A stretch of DNA of 64,000 nucleotides from NCBI GenBank assembly GCA_965603825.1, contig CBFDEM010000013.1, positions 124,001 to 188,000 on the forward strand. The letters are read 5' to 3'. The notes below the pieces were generated by a model. The model saw nothing but the letters and a program-made list of their open reading frames with translations, was not told the DNA's origin and made no database searches. A program made the translations under genes and the position numbers. This DNA comes from Blepharisma stoltei ATCC 30299. Lineage: Eukaryota; Protista; Ciliophora. Shown one piece after another: positions 15,709 to 18,916 of the stretch (position 1 is its first letter; the number at the start of each line of letters is the position of its first letter).

Positions 15709-17274
15709 ATGCAAACTGAAAGTCTAGGAATAACTATAATCAGAACTGAAGGCTACGCACACCCTTGCCTAGGGTGCTATATTTCAGTTAATGGAAGACT
15801 TTGTGATGTAATTACTCCTTTAACGGAAGAAAATGAAGCGAATGCAGTCATCATCCCGACGAAAGGAAATTTAAGACTAGCTGTTAATACGATGGGCAAG
15901 CCAGGAACATTTTTGGGATCAGTTAGTTGCTCTCTAGATATAGCTAAAACTCAAGGCTACTATTGATTGCCTCTTCTAGACCCAACACAAAATGATAAAA
16001 TTGACGAAATCCCTAAAGAAATCAGTAACCCAAAAATTTTAATAGCAATTAATCCCAGAACCAACGATAATACTTCAGAAAAATTATCTAAACTTGAGGA
16101 AACAAATGACACAGAAAGATGCTCAAAGTCAAAATCTGAAATCTTATTTAATGTAGGCGATCAAAGCACCATAAAAATAGTTGACCAAGATACCGATATG
16201 GATAGTGACTATAATATCGAAATTGAAAAAATTTCGAAAAATTCTGAAAATTTATTCGGATCATCTGAAATTGAGAGGTATAAACTGCTGGCAAGACGGT
16301 ATTTTGAGCTAAAATCTGAATTAAAATCAACTTTTATTAAACTAGAAAAATCTCAAGAAAAGCAGGCAGAGCTTGAAAAAGAACTAAATTTAAAAAAAGA
16401 AAACGAATCAATTTTAACAGCCCAAATACAAGAAAAAGACAGCAGCATTTCTGCGTTAAAATCTACAATCAGCAACTTAAAAATTTGCAATCTAAGCCTA
16501 GAAAATGACCAAAAAAAGCTGCAAGATAAATTAAATAAGCACCAAAATTCAAGGGCTTTAGAAATTGAAAGCCTAAGAAGCGAAAACGAAAATCTCAAAA
16601 AAAAACTTAACCAATTTGAAACACGGACAGATAAGTTACAAAATGTTATTCATAACTTAAGTGCTGATATGAGCTTTAATGACTCAAAAATAAATGATGA
16701 AAATGTGTTTAAAGACGATTTCAAAGAAAATAAAGGCAAAAATACATCAAAAAACAAAGAAAAATGCTCAAGCCTCGACCACAGTGTGCTAAGTGATATT
16801 GATATTTCTTTAAATAACATTGTGAAAAAGCATAAATTAGAGTCAAGTTTCATTAAAAAGCAAGATCACGTTTATTCTTATGAAAATAAATCAGTTTATA
16901 TCCTCCTTAGAAATGGATCATTATTTTTTAAAAGTGATAATGGCTACAAGCCGATTGTAGATCTTTTTGCGAAGCCTGGAAACCCAAGATCATTGAGCAA
17001 GGGTCAGTCAACTCCGAAAATTCAGTTAGTTACAAATAGTCCATCAAATAAACGTCATAGAAGGTTTGGGTCATCAAATATTATACTGGAGAAGACCAAA
17101 GGATTTGATTTTGATAGAACTATTGAAACCCAGAGACATCAGTCTTCAGAAAGATGCCTTTTAGGTCATGGAAATGAAAAGGGATCGAAAACTCCAAGAT
17201 CGGTTGCACCTTTAACTGATAGGACAAATAGATTCAAAAATGGAAAAGCTATGCATAAGGCCCCGTTTAAATAA
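15709..17274 (+). CDS. Coiled-coil protein, possible degenerate GAS2/GAR-like C-terminal domain (521 aa)
   Basis: Adjacent same-frame ORFs joined by TGA at 15964-15966; heptad region; VYSYENKSVYILLRNGSLFFKSDNGY loosely GAR-like. Confidence 0.75.
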
Positions 17275-17326
17275 AATGCTTATAAATAGTCAGTCTAATT
17301 GAAATTATAAGTTAATCATTTAAGAT

Positions 17327-18346
17327 TTAGGCTTGGTTTTCGTACTCAGCCAAGGTATCTTGTACTCTGCCATTATTTTTGATTAAGGTCACTAGGACTT
17401 CTGATTCAGGAATGAACCTACCAGCCACTTGCCTGCAGCTTACAACAAGTCTGCCAAAGTGAAAAGGAATTTTATTTTCTATGCATTTTCTTCTTAGCTT
17501 ACTGAAATCATTGACGACCCTTTCCTTGTCGCTAACACTAATGCAAATGTCTCTGGGTTGCTCAATTTCATCTGAAAACGTCAAGTTTTCTTCCAACAGT
17601 GATGATATCCCTGATTTTACAGTTTTCGCAGATTTTCCTGACTCAAACAATGACCTTGGTGTATATTTTAACTTATTCTCACTGCTCACCGTTAGTCTTG
17701 CTTGCTCAAGCTGTGGAGATTTGCTTGGTGAGCTTCTTAGCACTCTTTTGGCTGGCGTTATCTCAGGTATATCGCTCTCTTCAGGGATATTTTCTTTTTT
17801 CTCAAAACTTCTCGTTCTCCTCTGAGGTAACGACACAACGTTTACTTTGGGTTTTGGCTGAGATAGCTTTTGAGCCAGCTGAGACCAATGGAATTTCAAG
17901 CTTTCTGAGGAATGGTCTATCCCCAAGCCACTTTTCAAGGCCAGATCCCAGTAACTTCTGCTTTTGGACTTGCCAGGATGCTTTTCGACGTACTCAGTCA
18001 TCAATTTGTCCTCTTCGGGGGAATATTGTTTGCGATTTCCCACCTTGGCGGCTGGGATAGGCTTGGAATGCGCAATTTGGATTTCATAGTCTTTCGTTTC
18101 TTGAAGCTCGCCAAGAGTGACTGAATCTTTAACGATCTTGAATGAATAGACAGGGTGGTCTTTGGCATTTTCTGCTGGAATCCTGAAATTGACGTCAAAT
18201 GGGACCAATTCGATTGAGTCTGATTCGAACTTCCTCGTCATTGTGCCGCCGTATTTCTCCACGAGCTTTCTGATCTCTTCTTTCTCTTTGCAGTTCTGCA
18301 TGAAAAACTTCATTTTGTTCTTCCCGCTCGCAAAAATCTTAACCAT
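17327..18346 (-). CDS. Rap1/TERF2IP-like protein: BRCT + Myb + RCT-like C-terminus (339 aa)
   Basis: BRCT (MKFFM..IRKLVEKYGG..YSFKIVKDSV..DYEI), Rap1-type Myb (RKQYSPEEDKLMTEYV..YW..HSSESLKFHW), C-terminal VLVTLIKNNGRVQDTLAEY. Confidence 0.75.
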   Translation of the reverse strand: MVKIFASGKNKMKFFMQNCKEKEEIRKLVEKYGGTMTRKFESDSIELVPFDVNFRIPAENAKDHPVYSFKIVKDSVTLGELQETKDYEIQIAHSKPIPAAKVGNRKQYSPEEDKLMTEYVEKHPGKSKSRSYWDLALKSGLGIDHSSESLKFHWSQLAQKLSQPKPKVNVVSLPQRRTRSFEKKENIPEESDIPEITPAKRVLRSSPSKSPQLEQARLTVSSENKLKYTPRSLFESGKSAKTVKSGISSLLEENLTFSDEIEQPRDICISVSDKERVVNDFSKLRRKCIENKIPFHFGRLVVSCRQVAGRFIPESEVLVTLIKNNGRVQDTLAEYENQA

Positions 18347-18916
18347 TTTTTATAAATCTATGGGATTTTGAAAGAAAAATAGATTAAATTGATTTGTTGA
18401 AGTTGGTAAAATAATAATTATATGTGATAATGAGTAAGTATGTTATTTATATATTATGAATTTTTAATTTATTTAATGTAAAAATAGGCCCTGCTTTCTT
18501 TTCTTAATTAAAACCATTTTTCTAATCTAATTTTTATTCTATAATTTGGATAAATTTCGCAAGCTATTTATAGCCTATTTTAGCGTGTGTAAAGTAAATA
18601 GAAGATACTTACATTAATTGCAAACTCCAAAAGCTCAAAGTAACATAAAGGATTATCTTAAAGCTAGGGACAATTGTTTTGGTGAGTTATAATAAGCCTT
18701 AAACACAATAAACTCAGCAAGAGATCTAAATGCTTCTTTTAGCCAAGATATAAACCAGAGACCTAATAATTTATTAAAGTAAGCCTGAGCTAATCTAAAA
18801 AATCAAACTAAATAAGCTAAATCAAAAACAAAATTTATTGAAAACTTCATCATTTAGCATATTGCAGCAGTATTTAAACTATTTTCATAAGTTTTAATTA
18901 CCAAAACAATGCTAAA

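Follow-up and report, generated by a model that had tools for sequence, protein, structure and literature searches.

The window analysed here is a stretch of 64,000 nucleotides from Blepharisma stoltei ATCC 30299 (positions 124,001 to 188,000 of contig CBFDEM010000013.1). On its minus strand lies an intact open reading frame (ORF) of 339 codons, running from ATG to TAA (C13 in the genome), in which neither an in-frame TGA, TAA or TAG codon nor a credible tiny intron (15–16 nt) was found. The initial annotation had described its product as an N-terminal BRCT-like block followed by a Myb, an S/P-rich linker and a helical C-terminus, and had proposed it as a candidate ciliate Rap1. The quoted strings and the four parts are all present in the 339-aa ORF: the Myb strings GNRKQYSPEEDKLMTEYV...YW...HSSESLKFHW occupy aa 103–155, and VLVTLIKNNGRVQDTL is located near the C-terminus of the protein. 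Pfam BRCT_2 matched the window protein at aa 7–88 with 35.9 bits (cutoff 27.3), which bears out the BRCT-like block. Pfam Myb_DNA-binding scored 21.3 bits at aa 105–156, below its cutoff, and the Pfam profiles Myb_Rap1 and Rap1_C had no match in the window protein. An AlphaFold2 (AF2) model was computed from a 36-member family alignment (mean pLDDT 81). The BRCT domain, the three-helix Myb and the C-terminal domain were modelled confidently, and the C-terminal tail reached a pLDDT of 88.7 when modelled alone. The linker (aa ~163–260) was disordered in the model; it has a net charge of +4 and a pI of 9.5, and the Myb domain has a net charge of +2. The features of the gene, and the members of its family in the genome, are collected in Table 1.

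Table 1. Features of the window gene (window coordinates) and family members found in the genome
Feature	Coordinates	Strand	Length	Description
Complete coding sequence	17327..18346	-	339 codons + TAA stop (17327–17329)	Intron-free
BRCT domain, aa 1–95	18062..18346	-		Pfam BRCT_2, RAP1 profile match, AF2 pLDDT 92–98
Myb domain, aa 103–162	17861..18040	-		Invariant W133, HSxxSLxxHW helix 3; three helices, pLDDT 96–98
S/P/K-rich basic linker, aa 163–262	17561..17860	-		AF2 pLDDT 42–60, without secondary structure
C-terminal domain, aa 263–339	17330..17560	-		Beta hairpin, short helix, three-helix UBA/CUE-like bundle (aa ~292–339)
3' UTR and poly(A) site	17296..17326	-		Contig ends of 4 runs, T8 loose end
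C13 (window gene)			339 aa	Full BRCT-Myb-tail
C55			330 aa	Full BRCT-Myb-tail
C38			444 aa	Full BRCT-Myb-tail
C32			513 aa	Full BRCT-Myb-tail
C15			295 aa	Full BRCT-Myb-tail
Partial (L015)	G000:C32:808574-808963		325 aa	Myb and two tandem tails, BRCT-less
Partial (L014)	G000:C6:249535-249774		246 aa	Profile match in linker-tail part only

Transcript contigs were available from four runs of one study. The label of these runs as RNA is a guess, and their discrete gene-by-gene contigs, like the poly(A) trace in one of them, are consistent with RNA. The contigs are colinear with the window gene and have no internal joints. A discrete contig of 1.0 kb covers the gene in all four runs, and one of these contigs spans 17296–18338. 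The contigs end at 17296–17299 in the four runs, and in one of them a loose end of T8 precedes 17296; on the minus strand this reads as poly(A), 31 nt downstream of the TAA. The window gene gives rise to an unspliced, polyadenylated transcript. Tiny introns within the ORF, or a hidden extension of it, were ruled out by the jointless contigs, by the poly(A) 31 nt downstream and by the identical end residue of the orthologue described below. Upstream of the gene, the AT-rich interval 18339–18880 has no transcript contig in the four runs, and the next contig starts at ~18881. On the other side, a 435-aa coiled-coil-like ORF at 15967–17274 (+) converges on the Rap1-like gene; its contigs end at 17259–17265, so that the 3' ends of the two convergent mRNAs lie ~30 nt apart.

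In the genetic code of this genome, UGA stands for tryptophan. An orthologue encoded on a public contig (L007:3653-4720, plus strand) is 62% identical to the window protein and writes the Myb tryptophan as TGA, where the window gene has TGG (W133). Because of this TGA, gene callers using the standard code break the orthologue in two, a BRCT piece (P0006, 141 aa) and a tail piece (P0002, 189 aa), and the break hides the BRCT-Myb-tail architecture in public protein sets.

The single window protein was used as a phmmer query over 1.84 billion representative sequences. This search gave 74 matches, and names were looked up for 30 of the 74. The strong matches form a family sharing the same three-part architecture. 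Beyond this family, the search reached bona fide Rap1s, namely Thecamonas P0049 (3e-7), P0053 (2.4e-6) and Salpingoeca P0057 (7.7e-6), as well as vertebrate-type sequences. Pfam finds BRCT_2 and Myb_Rap1 in those bona fide Rap1s, and Rap1_C too in most of them. The close relatives of the window protein scored 18.9–24.2 bits on Pfam Myb_Rap1, for which the cutoff is 27.1.

A profile of the family was then compared with all PDB sequences. Human TERF2IP (chain 8rd4_D) came first, with an E-value of 1.4e-20, and the human RAP1 strings given in the initial annotation agree with this chain as aligned. The RAP1 BRCT structure 7oz0 (E 5.3e-8) ranked ahead of the BRCT domains of REV1 and PARP4, and the RAP1 Myb structure 1fex was matched at E 4.2e-5, while the next Myb chains stood at E 0.27. 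When the family profile was aligned with that of 11 bona fide Rap1s, hhalign returned a probability of 99.7% and an E-value of 8.8e-27 over 156 contiguous columns, covering both domains at the same spacing. Foldseek with the full model placed 8rd4_D ('Telomeric RAP1:DNA-PK complex') at the top, with 7oz0 also among the top two. The profile and structure searches that had been proposed for the candidate divide: BRCT_2 matched and RAP1 chains came out on top for the full model, but the Myb_Rap1 and Rap1_C profiles found nothing in the window protein.

The reverse searches pointed the same way. Against the whole genome, the vertebrate-type Rap1 P0059 matched only the four closest paralogs of this family, with the window gene second (8.1e-10). 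The Salpingoeca Rap1 P0057 likewise matched only these four, with the window gene first (2.4e-10). In a comparison of language-model features, the ten best named matches were all clusters of the Rap1/BRCT_2 type, and TERF2IP was the best of them (0.90, with 179 shared features). A six-frame search of the whole genome with Pfam Rap1_C and Myb_Rap1 did not match the window locus. Its sole matches were three sub-threshold loci of 15–18.5 bits: L001 (G000:C11:552198-552359), L003 (G000:C14) and L005 (G000:C5:256341-256484). The ORFs read at L001 and L005 are ordinary R2R3-type Myb proteins, and their matches are cross-matches between Myb repeats; both were rejected as Rap1. Since only R2R3 Myb genes were recovered by this six-frame search, the rest of the genome contains no better candidate for Rap1.

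That the Rap1 likeness reflects chance or convergence, in which an unrelated BRCT protein came to carry a generic Myb, would fit the failure of the window protein alone to match Pfam Myb_Rap1 and Rap1_C, but the 156-column profile-profile match, the lead of human RAP1 far ahead of every other PDB chain and the agreement of the reciprocal matches effectively refute this explanation and leave it a negligible probability. At the level of sequence, these comparisons demonstrate that the N-terminal BRCT domain and the adjacent Myb domain are one module homologous to Rap1/TERF2IP.

The named members of the family come from Fabrea salina, Stentor coeruleus (SteCoe_24969), Climacostomum virens and B. 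stoltei, and their public annotation reads only BRCT-domain or hypothetical protein. The database matches establish a family found across the heterotrichs Blepharisma, Stentor, Fabrea and Climacostomum. To collect the paralogs, the genome was searched with the window protein, matches were translated with UGA as tryptophan, and the products were scored with the family profile. We found at least five full BRCT-Myb-tail genes and two partial ones in the genome, so that the single candidate Rap1 of the initial annotation gives way to one member of a paralogous set. The paralogs are 23–39% identical to the window protein. Each of the four other full genes carries one TGA somewhere within its BRCT-Myb match. 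A maximum-likelihood tree computed quickly from the BRCT-Myb region joins the window gene to its orthologue and to one sequence from Fabrea. Duplications in this tree are deep and its backbone is unresolved. Two Rap1-like rows on long branches lie within the ciliate-type group, and the tree neither orders the paralogs nor parts them from Rap1. A word-indexed search with the family alignment added nothing.

The C-terminal tail resembles that of Rap1 only weakly. The C-terminal domain of Rap1 (RCT) is a six-helix bundle that contacts its partners mainly through helices 1 and 2 (PMC8653790). The initial annotation had called the RCT truncated. The tail is indeed as short as described, but this is not a defect of assembly or annotation: its end position is identical in 46 of 46 aligned relatives and in the orthologue, and the poly(A) site follows 31 nt after the stop codon, so that shortness of the tail characterises the family and the gene is not truncated. 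In every member the tail closes with a conserved bundle of three helices and ~50 residues. Within the alignment of 46 tails, L321 and G326 are invariant and F297, L300 and C304 are near-invariant, and a helix with the pattern F-x2-L-x3-C is conserved across the family. At most three of the six RCT helices are present in the tail, and helices 4–6 are absent.

Pfam Rap1_C matched none of the 46 family tails, Pfam CUE matched 3 of 46 weakly (best E 0.0034) and Pfam UBA matched 1 of 46 (E 0.087). In the PDB sequences, the matches of the tail profile were limited to designed TPRs and a fragment of Cas3, with no Rap1 in the list, and a feature search with the tail alone gave no usable match. Foldseek of the tail model listed nothing below E 0.1, and the RCT of S. 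pombe Rap1 was among the entries listed. An exhaustive structural search with the last 48 residues gave many UBA and CUE domains at Z 5.0–5.8, versus Z 4.1 for the RCT; values up to 5.8 are in the range that the tool calls common for small helical bundles. The RCT match at Z 4.1 was human RAP1 309–353 (3k6g_A), which superposes on the tail at 1.9 A over 45 residues. Alignment of the tail with a six-member RCT alignment by hhalign gave 69% and E 4.4e-5 over 27 columns, and set the tail motif EVL-x2-L-x4-G-x-V-x2-T on RCT helices 2–3 (VTKALL-x2-SG-x-V). In six bona fide Rap1s, the best segment for the tail profile lay at this position of the RCT as well, with tiny scores.

These results can be read in two ways. 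If the tail were a true ubiquitin-binding CUE or UBA domain, the protein would be a BRCT-bearing reader of ubiquitin in DNA damage and not an adaptor of the shelterin type. The best structural neighbours speak for this, since they include SMARCAD1 CUE1, NBR1, TNK1, EDD and HHR23A at Z 4.9–5.8, as do the weak Pfam CUE matches and the atlas structural neighbours EF-Ts, NAC/HYPK UBA and GIP1_N. However, all of these scores remain within the range common for small helical bundles, the N-terminal half of the human RAP1 RCT superposes just as tightly, and hhalign places tail and RCT in the same register. We regard a ubiquitin reader as very unlikely. The alignments and the model weakly indicate that the tail is related to the N-terminal half of the Rap1 RCT. 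Because partners are bound mainly through RCT helices 1 and 2, the ciliate tail could be a minimal RCT that retains the binding half. The Rap1 identity proposed for the candidate stands for the BRCT-Myb part, where profile, hhalign and reciprocal searches agree, and is weak for the RCT, where Rap1_C found no tail and the fold is a generic UBA-like one.

Taken as a whole, the observations are best explained if the window gene encodes a heterotrich protein of the Rap1 family that would protect chromosome ends as an adaptor, via a DNA-bound partner. We put the probability of this reading at roughly 60%. The net charge of the Myb domain is modest and similar to that of vertebrate Rap1, so the window protein probably does not itself read telomeric DNA. 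It would act as an adaptor, as human and fission-yeast Rap1 do. The C-terminal bundle, taken as the equivalent of RCT helices 1–3, would dock on a helical motif of a DNA-bound partner, and the BRCT-Myb module would contact factors that act on DNA ends, much as RAP1 does in the human RAP1:DNA-PK complex, which would keep the very many macronuclear chromosome ends from being handled as breaks. The basic linker may contribute non-specific contacts with DNA or serve nuclear import. The telomere role of the window protein is one that we infer from its homology.

The partner search was limited in power. A Pfam TRFH search of the genome gave no match, and neither did its controls, which makes the blank uninformative. 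The telobox pattern DLKDKWR had no match in the genome, and the pattern KDKWRN had two, both in short non-Myb frames and ascribed to chance. The earlier suggestion that heterotrichs keep a double-strand arm of shelterin is so far unsupported, no TRFH or telobox partner having been found by these weak tests.

A different function for the family has to be weighed against end protection. The family may descend from Rap1 and have been re-used, either as adaptors of chromatin and transcription or in the handling of breaks during macronuclear development, with a telomere role in at most one paralog that need not be the window gene. The size and diversity of the family would suit such a history: at least five full and two partial paralogs stand at 23–39% identity and include BRCT-less forms and one with two tails, and the tree has deep duplications and an unresolved backbone. 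The lack of a detected TRF-like partner would suit it too, within the reach of silent TRFH controls and two telobox patterns, as would the known non-telomeric roles of yeast and mammalian Rap1 (PMC8657031, PMC5889507). Nevertheless, the BRCT-Myb module has kept the conservation pattern of Rap1, the best match of the Salpingoeca Rap1 in the genome is the window gene itself, and our results hold no pointer to another function. Re-use is an unlikely explanation, albeit one with an appreciable chance of being right.

Returning to the adaptor reading, a broader version of it can be drawn. Heterotrichs would then keep a shelterin-like system on the duplex side of the telomere, built on expanded Rap1 paralogs with a minimal three-helix RCT. 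The paralogs would be split among end contexts, namely macronuclear, micronuclear and newly healed ends, and would perhaps control end factors of the Ku/DNA-PK type in the manner of human RAP1. We offer this as speculation and consider it rather doubtful. If it were true, ciliate telomere biology would gain a Rap1 arm.

Ciliates are classic telomere models. The ciliate telomere proteins treated in the reviews we examined are OB-fold end binders only, and in agreement with the initial annotation no Rap1 from a ciliate was found in the literature searched, a body from which subscription journals were largely out of reach. The window gene represents a variant of the Rap1 family in a lineage for which this literature describes none, with a half-length tail and an expansion of paralogs that is unusual for Rap1. 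A heterotrich BRCT-Myb family that is firmly related to Rap1 traces Rap1 to a very early ancestor of the eukaryotes. The shortness of the tail suggests that the RCT may have had helices 1–3 as its ancestral functional core. The family also offers testable candidates for the shielding of very many macronuclear ends from break repair, and knock-down by RNAi is established in Stentor. This significance rests on homology read from sequence.

BRCT, Myb and RCT are common to all known RAP1 homologues (PMC10813129), and the ciliate protein follows the human one in most of this plan. Like human RAP1/TERF2IP, it has, in this order, a single N-terminal BRCT domain, a Myb with the helix HS-x2-SL-x2-(H/R)-(W/Y), a linker that is disordered and a C-terminal domain made of helices. 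It differs in that its tail ends with the third of the RCT-equivalent helices, in that the bundle is preceded by a beta hairpin, and in that the ciliate gene is multi-copy. The aligned linkers of vertebrate Rap1 are acidic (−4 to −14), whereas that of the window protein is basic, as given above. The net charge of the vertebrate Rap1 Myb is 0 to +5, a range that includes the value of the window protein. Human and fission-yeast Rap1 have no DNA binding of their own and are recruited by TRF2 and Taz1, respectively (PMC10813129).

Among the distant relatives, the proteins of Thecamonas trahens (AMSG_09791, P0049) and Salpingoeca urceolata (P0057) are direct phmmer matches of the window protein. 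Both score above the cutoff of Pfam Rap1_C, at 26.1 and 29.0 bits respectively, in contrast to the ciliate family. The UBA and CUE domains among the structural neighbours of the last 48 residues (SMARCAD1 CUE1 6h3a_B/6qu1_D, NBR1 UBA 2mj5_B and TDP2 UBA 6q00_B, Z 4.6–5.7) differ from the ciliate tail in having no significant sequence relation to it. A protist precedent is RAP1 of Trypanosoma brucei, which, going by its description (PMC10813129), is likewise a highly divergent Rap1 with a BRCT and a Myb, recognised by weak sequence likeness only. Unlike the ciliate protein, TbRAP1 has an extra Myb-like domain that binds DNA and RNA, and it carries an RCT (PMC10813129).
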